Assembly: GCA_038496445.1 (NCBI GenBank)
Contig: JALMLS010000426.1
Location: 1-52,930 of the forward strand
Origin: Trichosphaerium sp. ATCC 40318
Taxonomy: Eukaryota; Protista; Tubulinea
Length of the DNA stretch: 52,930 nt
Direction: 5' to 3'
Part shown: positions 18,991 to 40,207 of the stretch, in pieces
Numbering within the stretch: position 1 is the first letter of the stretch
Layout of the letters: every line of letters starts with the position of its first letter
Notes under the pieces: generated by a model
The model's input: only the letters and a program-made list of their open reading frames with translations
What the model was told of the DNA's origin: nothing
Databases searched by the model: none
Program-made: the position numbers and the translations under genes

Positions 18991-19174
18991 AAAACCAAAT
19001 TACTGTGTTGTTAGTATTAATAGAACTAGAATTGTATTGTAGTATGTGATGACTTAACGTCTTTTATCAAATTATATATGACGGGTTTAGTTAGGAATAA
19101 ATGAGTCAAGACAATATCATGAGACAGACAACATTGTCATACTTAGCAATTTTCAATATCTTGTCAAAAAAAAA

Positions 19175-19260
19175 TGCAGAGTGGGACTCGAACCCACACG
19201 TGGTTACACACCACACTGCGTCCTTAACACAGCCTCATTATCCAATTCGAGCACCTCTGC
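19175..19260 (-). tRNA. tRNA-Leu(AAG), copy A (2-nt deletion in the acceptor 3' strand; possible pseudogene)
   Basis: Cloverleaf with CTGTG-TTAAGGA-CGCAG arm, long variable arm, GTGGG-TTCGAGT-CCCAC T arm, and an oligo-T terminator. Confidence 0.8.
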
Positions 19261-19268
19261 AAGGTGTA

Positions 19269-19339
19269 TGGGTCAACCAGGAATCGAACCTGAACTGTAG
19301 CACCTTCAATGCCATGTGCTTCCGTTACACCATTGACCC
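19269..19339 (-). tRNA. tRNA with GAA (Phe) anticodon, copy A
   Basis: GGGTCAA/TTGACCC acceptor, GTGT/GCAC D stem, TGGCA-TTGAAGG-TGCTA, TCAGG-TTCGATT-CCTGG. Confidence 0.8.
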
Positions 19340-25284: not shown

Positions 25285-26032
25285 ATGGATGAAAATGCCT
25301 CTCGTTTGAGTACTACACCACCTGGTAGATCAAAAGTAAGTCCGTCTACAACGAAACAACTACTAATTCTAAATTAGAGACCGGTAAAGCAACTTCCTAA
25401 AGTCCTCAGGTACAGGAACAACAGTAACAGGCGCCAATCAATTGTTTTAAACGAAATTACGAACTCGCCACCAGTAAGACGCGTCAACGTGTTAAAAATT
25501 GTCGTCACTGATCTCCTCATAGTCCCACAACGGTCACCACTACTCTACAACAAGACGCGAAAAGTTGTCAAAAAAAGACTCATTGTACATTGAGGCACGA
25601 ACATTTCTCAAAATGAGACAAAGAAAGCAACAACCTAATATTGTGTTCCACTAGGTAGCAGACCGTGAGACAATTTTAACGGGCCTAGAGAACGCTATCT
25701 CCAACATTGACCAAGAATTAATTTCATACAATTCGTTGTTAATGTCTTCTCAGTCTGACACTATGAATAGCATGGATAGAGTCGCATACGTCATGAAGAG
25801 GTACGATAAACTTTCAAAACGTTCTCAGAGTTGATGACTTAATCGTACAATCAATAGAAGAAATGATAAACTTAAGAAAGATAAAAAGAAATGGAAATCT
25901 AAGCTTGATGAAGTTTCAAAGGCTTTAGATGATGTCATTACAAGAGACTGGAGGCTATGCATTAATAATATGCAAAACCAGCAGTGGTTCTATGACTACG
26001 AAAAGAAAGAGCAAAGCGAATTTAAACACTAA
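25285..26032 (+). CDS. Hypothetical coiled-coil protein, multi-exon
   Basis: Short exons splice into a continuous frame (MDENASRLST...QSEFKH*); not shown in the ORF track. Confidence 0.55.
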
Positions 26033-26297
26033 AGTGTTTTGAACGAAAAATGCAAGCTGCTTTTTTGGCTCTACGCGGCCATTGTACAAAATATAATCAA
26101 ATTCTGATATGTTACTGACTCACATACACGTGTTTATGTGTTTGTGAGTTACTTTATTGAATCATTAGTTATTTAGTATTAATGCGACTAAGATCGCACA
26201 AGTTGAACAACGTAACGTTGTTTAAACAATGCAAATTTTTTTTGTACACAAATAACATATTGTGCACTTATTTTTGAGTATATTAAGTACTCTTTAG

Positions 26298-28792: not shown

Positions 28793-28863
28793 TGGTCAAT
28801 GGTGTGACGGAAGCACATGGCATTGAAGGTGCTACAGTTCAGGTTCGATTCCTGGTTGACCCA
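28793..28863 (+). tRNA. tRNA with GAA (Phe) anticodon, copy B (G1 changed to T)
   Basis: Near-identical to 19269-19339. Confidence 0.75.
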
Positions 28864-28871
28864 CATGCCTT

Positions 28872-28956
28872 GCAGAGGTGCTCGAATTGGATAATGAGGC
28901 TGTGTTAAGGACGCAGTGTGGTGTAACCACGTGTGGTTCGAATCCCACCCTCTGCA
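28872..28956 (+). tRNA. tRNA-Leu(AAG), copy B (1-nt deletion in the T stem)
   Basis: GCAGAGG/CCTCTGC acceptor, AAG anticodon, long variable arm, TTTT terminator. Confidence 0.8.
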
Positions 28957-29106
28957 TTTTATGCTTTTTTAGTCAACAACACAAACTGTATGTGATTCTG
29001 TGCTATGACTGTTTTAATGTTTCACAAACATATTTACATTACAGAAATCATCCTTCCTGTAGCAATTTTTCAACAATTGAACAGTTTTATTATATTACAT
29101 TAACAT

Positions 29107-34790: not shown

Positions 34791-36199
34791 ATGGCAGTGT
34801 CTGAAAAGCAACCAAGGAATTTAATTATACGTAAGGAGTTCTCTGTTATCGAATTACACAAGAATTACCCTCCAAAGTGGCGATCAAAGAATAAGAAAGT
34901 CCTCGCAGCGCTATCGCTACCAAATGGGATTAAACACGTCGAAACGCCTTTAATATTGACAAAGTACGTATAAAACAGCCTTAACACGACCACAAACTCT
35001 ATAATTAGGTATTCTGAGCTGCGTGTACCAAAAAGCTTTCCAGCGGACTCCATTACGACATACAAACAAAAAGAAACGTCTTTTGAATATTTACCATCAA
35101 CAGACGCCGAAATTCAGTTCTACCCAAACTTTGCTGATAGAGAGCTCTTTAAAGTATACTCTGGACCATTATTTGCTCAAGATGAGCACCAAGTTGCTGG
35201 TAATACCAACTGACTTTACAACTTTCTGATTTCCTTCGTAGAACATCCAACGCTAGGCGCATTAAAGGAGGCTTTGCAAAAACTATCTCGCTCAGAAGAT
35301 AAGCTAAAGCCTCTCACTAGGGAGAATGGTGCAACTCCTTGTGTTATTCTAAATGTAGATAGACGCATATCCATTAATTTAGGTCCTTCAGAGGCTAATC
35401 CGAAAGGATTATATGGCAATAACTTTATGGCACGTGCCAAGAAATTACTGAGTTTTCTTAGTCGTTGCTTACTCTTTTTGTAGAATGCTACAGAAGAGTC
35501 TGTACAACAAGCAACAACGGTTCTATCTCCGCCGACCCTTACAAATATACTGGCATTTGAAGCACCTCCTAAAGGTAGTGGAGAATATTCATTTGGTACA
35601 ATAAACGATATTCTATCAACAGCATACACAGGTACACAAAACATCTTTCTTTAGAGGTATTATGTGCCTTTGTTTATTTATACTTCAAAGCATTTATGGC
35701 TGCAAAGAACGAAGTTAAATACCTCACCAAAGACACAAACAAGACGCCAAAAGTCACTATAAACACTGGACATTGGTATGTTCTTTTTAATCAAAAACAA
35801 TTGTCACGTGATTACTCACGTGATAAAAAAGGGGAACTGGCGCATACGGAGGGAATAAAACCATTATGGCACTATTACAAATTCTTGCAGCCGAGCTTGC
35901 ACAAGTGGACAAGTTTGTTTTCCATTCGTTTTCTTCTGAGTTCGCAGGCAGCTTTAAAGAAGCCGAGTCAATATTCGAAAAACTAGTTAGATCTCAAAAA
36001 GTTCCTTCAGTGAGCTCTGTACTTCTAGAAATCCAGAAGATGGGCTTTAAGTGGGGTCAATCTGACGGCAACTAACACTAACAAGGAGCTTTAGTGAATA
36101 GTCTATCACTCACTGTCCTTATAATAGCTGTCAGCCTTGTTAGTTTCGTTGCAAATAAAATAGTAAAAACATTTCAGTCCTTTGTACAATAAACTGAAA
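34791..36199 (+). CDS. Hypothetical multi-exon protein with C-terminal TM segment (model uncertain)
   Basis: Series of exon-like ORFs separated by GT-AG segments; hydrophobic end. Confidence 0.35.
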
Positions 36200-36222
36200 T
36201 TTTTCTAAAATAGTATTTTTTA

Positions 36223-36313
36223 TTGATTTACAACTTCGTATCTCTCTTGTGTACTTTTTCGCGTTTTAAGCGATTTGAAAGTAAACAGTCACGTGTCAAA
36301 GATGTAAAATCAA
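36223..36313 (-). promoter_or_regulatory. SECIS element (type II, GUGA core)
   Basis: GTGAC-TGTTTACTTT-CAAA-TCGC..GCGA-A-AAAGTACACA-AGAG, with lower helix TTGATTTTACATCTT/AAGTTGTAAATCAA. Confidence 0.8.
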
Positions 36314-36322
36314 CTCAATACT

Positions 36323-38440
36323 TTAAAGGCTGAACTTCGCCGAAAGGACTTTATCCAAACGCTAGAAAGTTAAAAATGTCAGAGAAGACATTTGTCATTT
36401 AACGAAACACGTACAGCCGGGATTGAGTCATAAGTGTTCATCTCATCAGGTTGAGCAACAAAGGTAACGGTACCATCTTCAATAACATAGAATCTAATAG
36501 GCCATGCAGCATAAGCTTGCTCAAAGCTATTCTCAATTGTGTCCACAAGCATTGGCAACTAAACCAAGTTTTTTTTTGATAAATAAACACATGATTACAT
36601 TACAAGGTAGTACCTGATATTGGTATTCTTTTACGAAAGATCTAGCAACACCACATCTTTCTATTGTTGTTCTAGGTTGTGTAATCTTCAAAGGGTCTCC
36701 AACAGGCCACTCATCGGAGGCGTGAGCCTCGACAATGTAAACTAGTAGAATATATTAGTAAAACAAGTTCAAAGGAAACACCAACGCACCTGTCAGAAAA
36801 TTAACGTTCCTACCGTGCTTGACAAGCATTTCATGCATGTCAGACTATAAAATAAATAATTAGACGTAAACACTAATACTTTGAAAGATGATAAAACAAA
36901 CAAAAGAATTGTAAACACAAAAACCCAATGTTCAGAGAAATCGAACTTTCGTGTCTTACCACATAGGAACAAAACGGCAGTCACGTATAAGAACCAGAAA
37001 TAATGACTGTTGGTTTTCCATTACTAAAGTGAGTCGCCATATAATCATGTAACATCACCTTGATAACGATAAGTGAAAAGACAACAGAAAAAAACACCAG
37101 GGTTACGTTTGTGCCATTGAGGTAAGCTAGTTTTGCTTGCGGTGCCGGTTTTCCAGGCGTTAGGTCTCCCTGTCGTGCTCTATTAAACTTCTGGTAATGA
37201 GGTATTCTTGTTATGAGCTCATTCTTTGGATACAATCCAGGTGCACAACGAATGTAGTCCACTGCCTTCTTATCTTTGTAACCAAACTCTTCAATAACTT
37301 GTTCTACAGGGAATATATTATACAGAGTATCAAACACAAAATCGTATAAGTTCAAAAACTGAAAGTACCTTGCACATGTGCAGCAACATGGATGGCATCA
37401 TTATCTGGATTAGAAAATTTTGCTTGAACAGCATCGGAAAGACGTAACTCTTCCTCTCGCTTTAGCATAGCTACCATTTTATCTAGAGGCGGCTTACTAT
37501 CAATAAGCTCTTTACTAGGCTTGACAAGATCAAAACCGCAACGACCATTAACAGGATGGAACATATGAACTCCACAACGCTGAAAAGAAAAAAAAGGGGT
37601 GAGGAACATACTTAGTAAAAACAAAATATTTACCATCCAGTGTCTTTGTCGCATACGTTCTTCGTGCAATAATGTGAATTTATGTTTCATGATAGCATAT
37701 AAACGCCTTTGGTGAACGAATTCTTCTTTCCAATTGGCCACATCCTATAAACTTTTTACACAAGATTTGGTGTGCTTAAACTGAAATAAACTTAGTTTGT
37801 TTTGAACGTACTTTGCCGTTTGCTATTGTAGGGAATACCTTATCACATAGTGATTTCCATAAATAAGGCGCACAAGCAATATTTTTACACTGGTTAGACA
37901 CTTGGGCAAAGTTCACAAGTGTAAAGAAGCTAAGATTATCTAACTTTGAATGAGAAATACAGTGTCACACAAATTAGACCTGTACCGCAAATAGTAATGA
38001 TAACTTCTGTGGGTAGCTCCAAAATATTAGCGTCCTTTGAGATAGGTATTACTGAAGGTGCTTCGGCCTAAATAGCGTAAGAAGGGAGATGAATTTAGCT
38101 TGGCAAAGGCTCACATTGTGATCTTTGTGATCTTTTGGAAGCGGTTCTTCGTATATGTGTACAGGAATAGACATACACGTCCAATGTCCAACGATAGTAC
38201 TTGCAAGATCTTTTGGTAACTCAAGGAAATAGCATCCCAACTCTATAACATAAATCATGTAGCCTACAACAATAGTTACTACAAAAAAATTCAAGGAAAA
38301 AGGCCTTTTTTTTTTCTTTTTTTTTCCCGACTGTCTTTGTATGTCGTTTAGTTGTCTTTTATGTAAAACATGCCTAAAGAATCTTCTTTAATTCCACGTG
38401 CATTTGTGATAAAAAATTTAATATCAGCACTGTTCAGCAT
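36323..38440 (-). CDS. F-box plus iodothyronine-deiodinase-like selenoprotein (Sec = TGA at 36981-36983)
   Basis: KPTVIISGSYT-TGA-LPF, then FLTVYIVEAHASDEW, MLVDTIENSFEQAYAAWPIRFYVI; F-box LELPTEVIITICDNL..LW; downstream SECIS; start tentative. Confidence 0.85.
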
Positions 38441-38579
38441 CTAGAAAAAGTATCAGGGTTTTTTTTTGGCACTACATTTTTGTGTAAAATTTATCCGTGT
38501 AAAACGACACACTGTAGTTGTATTTATGTTTTTGGATCGTACTTTTCTATCCGTATATATGTAAACGCGCTTGTATTCA

Positions 38580-38922
38580 TACCATATAATTCTTTAAAAG
38601 AAGTAGTTAGTTGCAATTCGACAAAGAATGAAAAAAAGTGGTTTAAGTTTTTTTTGTAGTATAAGTCTTACAATCGCCCTAGTTCTGCTAGTGTCCTTAT
38701 TACATGATCTTCTCTTTTTTTTCCACTACCTTCCCTTGCTTCAAGTGCTTGTACTCTTACTTCGTCAAGTGCTTCCATTATATCTACTAGGGCATCCCCC
38801 AATACTACCAGCGTTTAGTTGACTTTTAAAAAAGTACTTCAGGCGCACGTGCTAGTTGCTTTTTGCCACCTTCCTTCGCCATAGTTTTGGCAATCGCAAT
38901 AAATGCTTCTACTGAGGGCATT
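38580..38922 (-). CDS. Small hypothetical protein (model uncertain)
   Basis: MPSVEAFIAIAK exon can splice to a DIMEALDEVRVQ exon. Confidence 0.3.
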
Positions 38923-39412
38923 GGTGTTTGATCGTCCCTAGAGATGTTTAGATATCTGAGATATTTGAAAATAAGGCGCCTTCATATGGTATAAAATACC
39001 ACGTTGTACCATATTAAGTGGGTTTTGAAAACGTGTTTTAAAATAGATTATTTAAACATCTCCCATGAACGGTTTTTGATTTAGAATCGTTTACCGTTAA
39101 CAAAACGTACGAAAGCATCTTGCTATCGTTCTTTACGCAAGACAAAAACCATAGCGGGAGGGGTTGTTGATTTTTTGCATCGGTACAAATCTTTTTTGCT
39201 TGGTCCTCAATGAGGTCACATCTTTTTAATTCGTCATCATGCTAATACCGCCGTTAATTCAAACTGGACGTTAAAAATAGTTGTATACTACGTACAGCCA
39301 TCCTTTACTACGACATGCTGATCAAAGAAACCGAACAAGGCCGTATTTGTAATCAAGCGACGTTGAAAAACAGAGACTTTCATGCAGCAACACAATTAGC
39401 ATAAAAGTCAGC

Positions 39413-40134: not shown

Positions 40135-40207
40135 GGGATAGTGGTGTAAATGGTTAGCATGCGGCATTACCAGTGCTGGGATCGCAGTTCAAGTCTGTGC
40201 TATCTCA
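40135..40207 (+). tRNA. tRNA with ACC (Gly) anticodon
   Basis: GGGATAG/CTATCTC, GTGT/GCAT D stem, CGGCA-TTACCAG-TGCTG, CGCAG-TTCAAGT-CTGTG, downstream TTTTT. Confidence 0.75.

Follow-up and report, generated by a model that had tools for sequence, protein, structure and literature searches.

The minus strand of the 52,930-nt stretch of amoeba DNA analysed here (the window) carries a real, expressed gene in which an F-box and an iodothyronine deiodinase-like (DIO) part are joined in one transcript, and in which an in-frame TGA, conserved among homologues, occupies the catalytic column of the deiodinase family. The evidence supports reading this codon, number 477, as selenocysteine (Sec), with the incorporation of selenium itself being inferred. 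As a whole, the data are best explained, and we think probably explained, by a 605-residue soluble selenoprotein whose Sec domain would serve cullin-RING ligases in recognition or sensing; its activity and its binding to Skp1 are inferences.

Gene structure and transcripts

The coding gene and its exons are laid out as follows.

36323..39301, minus strand: entire coding gene (17 exons; 605 codons, Sec477 included)
Minus strand: exons 1-6, from high to low, 39301-39296, 39241-39111, 38937-38849, 38804-38672, 38591-38543, 38440-38374
Minus strand: exons 7-12, from high to low, 38263-38115, 38067-37986, 37939-37812, 37744-37634, 37579-37369, 37303-37107
Minus strand: exons 13-17, from high to low, 37058-36960, 36844-36790, 36741-36614, 36558-36415, 36361-36323
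36219..36224, minus strand: AATAAA polyadenylation signal, read from the sequence, just past a hairpin

Translation starts at ATG 39301 and stops at 36325-36323 (minus strand), and the introns are 15 GT-AG and one GC-AG (38373..38264). The GC-AG intron (38264-38373, minus strand) is backed by spliced contigs and by a transcript, L007, described below. We compared Logan contigs from four public runs with the window over 36100-38600; being spliced, these contigs are transcript assemblies. The joints of the splice model were found in contigs of the four runs, and all introns compared agreed, with one exon end corrected: the F-box exon ends at 37812 and not at 37839, which adds nine residues (VFPTIANGK). 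The contigs run on upstream through more exons with the frame still open, and the whole gene is tiled by overlapping spliced contigs. No single Logan contig of the four runs reaches from the F-box to the DIO part; that span comes from the transcripts L007 and L008.

A search of a representative protein library with the stop-free piece 36984-37301 returned a public protein of 476 aa, P0001, which is 100% identical over the query and whose last residues are exactly GSYT. The full 17-exon model was obtained by mapping the P0001 N terminus onto the window. It stands in place of an 11-exon model with its ATG at 38174 and the F-box exon ending at 37839, which was replaced after the RNA contigs and L007.

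L007, a 1934-nt public transcript contig (JGI 3300016894; also filed under MMETSP), carries both P0001, as an F-box ORF, and the 119-aa P0113, as a T4_deiodinase ORF. Because it is colinear with the spliced CDS (1818 nt, 5 nt differences, TGA at codon 477), the F-box and deiodinase-like exons belong to a single mRNA, from which the TGA is not removed by splicing. The same sample yielded a paralog transcript, L008 (JGI 3300016894 Ga0186627_101646; 2010 nt, 85.5% identical), with the same F-box, module and Sec-DIO architecture and with the TGA and full frame kept. Both parts also occur together in an orthologue cDNA, L001, and in an intronless genomic contig, L002, where the frame is interrupted by the TGA only.

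The first-pass annotation, made from sequence alone, had placed GSYT-TGA at 36981-36983 with the frame continuing through LPFCSYV, GT-AG introns leading on to FLTVYIVEAHASDEWP and AWPIRFY, and F-box exons (LELPTEVIITIC / DNLSFFTLVNFAQV...LW) joined in frame. All of this held: the TGA lies at 36983-36981 on the minus strand, the introns were confirmed by spliced contigs, and the F-box exon end moved from 37839 to 37812. The extent it gave the gene, 36323-38440, was too short, as ATG 38440 is internal (Met137) and the true start is 39301. A single transcript with F-box and DIO exons, which it had assumed, was borne out by L007, L008, L001 and L002, and removal of the TGA by splicing, which it had left possible, was not, the codon being retained in the mRNA.

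Several other features of the window were recorded. A divergent ORF (MKVVFLDVDGVV...) runs from about 39412 upward on the plus strand, about 110 nt from the gene's ATG, which suggests a short shared promoter region. Two pairs of tRNA-Leu(AAG) and tRNA-Phe(GAA) genes, the genes 7-8 nt apart, lie at 19174-19339 (minus strand) and 28793-28957 (plus strand); the pairs are an inverted duplication separated by about 9.5 kb. At 40135-40207 (plus strand) lies a tRNA-Gly whose anticodon is ACC.

The in-frame TGA and the 3'UTR hairpin

36981..36983, minus strand: in-frame TGA, codon 477, in the context SGSYT-U-LPFC
36223..36314, minus strand: SECIS-like type II hairpin, fold z -3.3
Minus strand: hairpin landmarks, GUGA 36292-36289; unpaired AAA 36276-36274; 3' GA 36246-36245

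The minus strand reads GKPTVIISGSYT-TGA-LPFCSYV at 36983-36981, and the CDS as a whole contains one TGA, 8 TGG and 14 Cys codons. At the DNA level, a TGA stands at the Sec column in ten of the ten homologous loci read (the window gene, L001-L005 and L007-L010), and in the homologous loci read as DNA the frame runs on after it into the PF00837 domain. About 68 of 75 representative homologue clusters have G-S-x-[TS] as their last residues and so stop directly ahead of the TGA. In the two homologue searches, six relatives carried W at this column, most likely because gene calling under code 4 translates TGA in that way. Where the first-pass annotation had envisaged Cys or Sec in homologues, alignment gave the TGA and no Cys form in any homologue seen, whether among the clusters, the read-through relatives or the DNA loci. 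The window gene can be aligned to P0062 through the Sec column, and the W of the relative P0130 falls opposite the Sec-to-Cys residue of the 4TR3 construct, so that the TGA corresponds to the catalytic Sec column of Dio3.

All four runs also contain a further transcript, about 92% identical to the gene. Synonymous changes make up 29 of its 35 listed CDS differences from the window and 10 of the 14 differences 3' of the TGA. Since these differences are mostly synonymous, we infer purifying selection upstream and downstream of the TGA alike. Two homologous loci, L003 and L004, use TGA at the Sec column and also as their own terminator, and in the window TGA terminates 4 of 15 long ORFs, in proportion to the frequency of TGA triplets. 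Given that TGA terminates ORFs in L003, L004 and the window, and that the CDS has 8 TGG codons against its one TGA, reassignment of UGA is very unlikely. No tRNA-Sec or other Sec-machinery gene was found inside the 52,930-nt window.

From the stop codon to the AATAAA (36224-36219), the 3'UTR forms one long hairpin. This has a long helix I, an internal loop with GUGA on its 5' side and AGAGA on its 3' side, and an upper part made of a helix II of 9-10 bp, an unpaired CAAA and a 4-bp mini-stem. Set against the SECIS pattern, the layout is GUGA, 12 nt, AAA, mini-stem, GA. The geometry agrees with UGA-N / N-GA-N and its tandem G.A pairs if G36245-46 is taken as the 3' GA; the tandem pairs are flanked by U.G and C.A and the core is GUGA. 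Green algae and a sponge are known to have SECIS elements of the GUGA_AA kind (PMC3473315).

A scan of the window with a SECIS pattern, which was drawn up after the candidate hairpin was already known, gave two matches, the hairpin and one at 25992; in shuffled sequence, 1.25 matches would be expected per 106 kb. The same pattern also matches the 3'UTRs of L002 and L003. The match at 25992-26047 (plus strand) lies inside a coding ORF, ending in WFYDYEKKEQSEFKH and a stop, and was judged to be chance.

Rfam (release 15) gave no SECIS match in the window or the 3'UTR, with SECIS_1 finding none even at E<=10 on 146 nt, and none in eight homologous loci, the 3'UTRs of L001-L003 and L008-L010 among them. 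L003 and L010 carry canonical-looking AUGA...AA...GA hairpins, yet these were missed by Rfam. Because such evident hairpins in relatives are missed too, the negative result says little; what it does mean is that the Rfam SECIS model misses the putative SECIS elements of this family.

The hairpin is conserved in the paralog L008. Its 5' core and helix II, and its 3' strand through CAAGAGA, are identical in L008 and the window; the flanking UTR has diverged, and the L008 apical loop has indels relative to the window hairpin. In distal helix I, pairing is kept in L008 through three double changes (UA/CG, AU/UA, GC/UG). All 26 of 26 pairs form in both hairpins, against 38-54% in slid controls. This covariation rests on only two full sequences, and 62 of 500 shuffles were equally good, which makes for a weak control. 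We regard it as likely that the UGA of Sec477 is recoded through a form-2 SECIS hairpin of GUGA type, Sec insertion being an inference.

Domains of the protein and its relatives

37845..38025, minus strand: F-box, aa 223-267, split by intron 37985..37940
37170..37579, minus strand: helical module, about aa 316-430, spanning intron 37368..37304
36326..37169, minus strand: deiodinase-fold (T4_deiodinase) domain, about aa 431-605, six exons

Profile and structure searches were run with pieces of the gene, P0001 or P0113, and not with the spliced full-length protein. On P0001, F-box-like (PF12937) matched aa 223-267 at E 6.7e-8 (32.6 bits, cutoff 24.3) and F-box (PF00646) matched at E 2.5e-7, above its curated cutoff; the F-box exon alone gave E 3e-4. 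A second F-box-like opening (FLELPKDLASTIVGHW, aa 187-202, 38115-38263, minus strand) precedes the real F-box. L008 retains it (VLELPKEFVSIILGDW); it has no Pfam match and is possibly a degenerate duplicate.

The helical module reads MFHPVNGRCGFD ... ELRLS ... QVIEEFG ... IPHYQKFNR in the window gene. The family motif, MFHPxNGRxGFD ... ELRLS ... QVxxEFG ... IPHYxKFNR, extends over about 110 aa, and the module is conserved in 34 of 34 aligned relatives. An AF2 model of aa 270-446 is helical (pLDDT 85.9). Neither PDB nor the ESM Atlas offers a fold matching the module, which has no Pfam match either, and comparison of P0001 with the ESM Atlas by features gave no usable match.

The part of the protein beyond the TGA belongs to the iodothyronine deiodinase family, PF00837. 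Exon 15 matches profile positions 141-177 and exon 16 positions 184-219, at E of about 5e-4 each and singly below the cutoff. P0113, the post-TGA ORF of the allelic transcript L007 (1 aa different), is recorded as PF00837, and relatives score 33-97 bits against the family at a cutoff of 27. Exon 16 alone matches mouse Dio3 (4TR3); a PDB sequence search with the pre-TGA piece gave no match. A 286-aa relative, P0130, covers the module and the whole DIO domain and is 64% identical to the gene's C-terminal part. Its match to Dio3 has E 1.9e-14, with YIVEAHAVDEW opposite YIEEAHPSDGW. The best PDB matches of its AF2 model (pLDDT 90.7, pTM 0.81) are Dio2 (9H48) and Dio3 (4TR3), at E of about 1e-12 to 2e-12 and TM by target of 0.76-0.78, and the next folds (ResA-type thioredoxin, E 2e-7) are five orders of magnitude behind. 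As the model is of a relative and not of the window protein, the fold is predicted. Any deiodination of iodothyronines would be an inference.

The window gene carries YIVEAHASDEW, the deiodinase Y-I-x-E-A-H-x-x-D-x-W motif. Of the Y-I-x-E-A-H-x-x-D-E-W columns checked in 62 sequences, those of E, H and W do not vary, and that of Y holds Y in 61. Near the Sec, the Cys of ERCGVAR is found in 47 of the 62. The Sec is the sole redox residue present throughout the sequences examined, and since the nearby Cys is not, a need for an external thiol partner would fit. We found no transmembrane anchor, the best 19-residue Kyte-Doolittle window scoring 1.39 and lying in the F-box helix.

The domain reading of the first-pass annotation fared well. 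Its F-box was recovered by profile (F-box-like, E 6.7e-8 on P0001), its deiodinase signature by T4_deiodinase matches on exons 15 and 16 and P0113, and its statement that the usual membrane anchor is absent held (best Kyte-Doolittle score 1.39). Its expectation that gene callers would truncate the gene was also met, P0001 (476 aa) ending at the TGA.

Members of this widespread family occur in other Amoebozoa and in one choanoflagellate; named sources are Arcella intermedia, Luapeleamoeba hula, Pellita catalonica and the choanoflagellate Helgoeca nana. An Arcella intermedia entry in UniRef (A0A6B2LE57, 'F-box domain-containing protein') is truncated at the Sec. Such entries amount to a systematic annotation error in which at least about 70 public sequence clusters are cut at the Sec codon, some of them named only 'F-box domain-containing protein'.

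Other N-terminal partners occur in the family. In a tree of the helical module, the F-box, present in 12 clusters, falls into two well-supported clades. BTB-BACK precedes the module in P0048 and P0066, with ZZ in one of them, and the DNA of both genes confirmed the TGA with the DIO ORF downstream of it. L004 (NCBI GCA_014466255.1 JACLAC010014532.1) and L005/L006 encode BTB-BACK(-ZZ) proteins 731-888 aa long that stop at a TGA in the same column, past which a T4_deiodinase ORF continues; they are a CUL3-type counterpart of the F-box form. Further N termini are ZZ alone (P0055) and SAM (P0059), and many members have none that is recognisable. As a domain pattern, the link to ubiquitin is recurrent; it is not universal, because many members lack a recognisable N-terminal domain or carry ZZ or SAM. 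A role of these proteins in ligases is inferred.

Proposed function and comparison with known systems

F-boxes plug proteins into the ubiquitin-tagging machinery, and BTB-BACK is a CUL3 adaptor. The protein consists of an N-terminal region (aa 1-220), the F-box (223-267), the helical module (about 316-430) and the deiodinase fold (about 431-605), the last predicted to be thioredoxin/peroxiredoxin-like with Sec477 as its catalytic residue. In the function we propose, the F-box would dock the protein on Skp1-Cul1, and the module and Sec domain would sit where F-box proteins keep their substrate-binding domain. The Sec domain would then most likely serve the cullin-RING ligase as a redox-reactive recognition or sensor domain, or as one that traps its partner covalently through a selenenylsulfide. 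F-box and BTB-BACK proteins have WD40, LRR or Kelch domains at the corresponding position. We favour a recognition or sensor role for the Sec domain because the unit of module and Sec domain takes the position of WD40, LRR or Kelch domains and does so behind BTB-BACK in relatives as well. By inference, a free deiodinase role of the thyroid-hormone type is less likely than this one; an amoeba would not be expected to have thyroid hormones. A tether to an SCF ligase and a dehalogenase or redox activity, all proposed in the first-pass annotation, remain inference. A bolder reading, which we raise only as a possibility, is that of a widespread protist family in which the Sec DIO fold and helical module form a recognition or sensor unit that is coupled to CUL1 through the F-box and to CUL3 through BTB-BACK. 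If true, it would tie protein degradation directly to redox or halogen chemistry based on selenium.

The main rival to a substrate receptor, and one that remains possible, is a soluble DIO-like redox or dehalogenating enzyme whose F-box or BTB-BACK only sets its own abundance, through auto-ubiquitination, or its localisation, without recruiting substrates. In its favour, the catalytic set of deiodinases is kept (Sec, the invariant E, H and W, and Y in 61 of 62 sequences), and the fold, on the relative's model, is that of Dio2/Dio3. In vertebrates, ubiquitination controls DIO2, and auto-ubiquitination is common among F-box proteins. Against it, the conserved helical module and the C-terminal placement behind two types of cullin adaptor resemble substrate receptors. 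The data do not separate the two readings.

The remaining rivals concern the codon and the fusion, and we consider each of them very unlikely. Were the TGA a true stop, the product would be a 476-residue F-box protein, with the DIO-like part an untranslated stretch, a separate cistron or a decaying remnant. Public gene callers do terminate P0001 there, and Rfam finds no SECIS match. Against this reading stand the mostly synonymous substitutions after the TGA, the conservation of frame and domain in 10 of 10 loci and in dozens of clusters, the exact coincidence of the position with the catalytic Sec column of Dio3, and the conserved 3'UTR hairpin. The UGA might instead be a sense codon for Trp or Cys, as the W in some database translations would suggest; the CDS, however, uses 8 TGG and 14 Cys codons to a single TGA, TGA terminates 4 of 15 ORFs in the window, and L003 and L004 have it both at the Sec site and as terminator. 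That assembly or annotation merely fused two adjacent genes could be argued from the lack of any single Logan contig of the four runs spanning both parts. Two independent full-length transcripts, L007 and L008, nevertheless have both parts, the cDNA L001 and the intronless genomic L002 join them, and spliced contigs tile the gene.

Returning to the reading of a Sec-containing recognition or sensor domain, the closest known proteins are the vertebrate deiodinases DIO1-3 (PF00837; mouse Dio3 4TR3, Dio2 9H48). The amoeba domain has the same family profile and, by prediction, the same fold, and shares with them the Sec after G-S-x-T and before P-F and the Y-I-x-E-A-H-x-x-D-x-W motif. DIO1-3 recode UGA through a 3'UTR SECIS, and the amoeba gene would do so through its putative SECIS. 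Unlike them, the amoeba protein has no N-terminal membrane anchor, reads SYT-U-LPFC in place of SCT-U-PPF, and has an F-box and a helical module of about 110 aa before the DIO domain. In Dictyostelium discoideum, Lobanov et al. (2007, PMC2375036) described a deiodinase-like selenoprotein, a DIO homologue that contains Sec and has a SECIS of type II in which an AAA is unpaired. The two genes are thus both amoebozoan Sec DIO homologues with a type II hairpin and an unpaired AAA, and the relevant sections of PMC2375036 mention no F-box or fused domain for the D. discoideum protein. To our knowledge, no function has been assigned to deiodinase-like selenoproteins outside animals.

Receptors with a sensor or enzyme domain include FBXL5 with hemerythrin, KDM2A/B with JmjC, and the BTB-BACK-Kelch cysteine sensor Keap1. 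They resemble the amoeba protein in having the cullin adaptor on the N-terminal side and the sensing or catalytic domain C-terminal; no receptor of this type is known to have a thioredoxin-fold domain or selenocysteine. In Aureococcus, SELENOM is fused to a pVHL beta domain, as reported from one alga (The algal selenoproteomes, PMC7539508). That protein likewise joins a protist selenoprotein domain to one that a cullin-RING substrate receptor is known to carry, and differs in selenoprotein family and in ligase module. In the full-text literature searched we found no description of an F-box fused to a deiodinase or other selenoprotein. The first-pass annotation's view that the architecture is undescribed therefore holds within the searchable literature only, and truncated members are already in databases. 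Deiodinase-like selenoproteins were known before; what is new is the architecture, an F-box or BTB-BACK followed by the helical module and a Sec DIO fold, and this fusion gives a testable lead to a selenium-dependent arm of the ubiquitin system.
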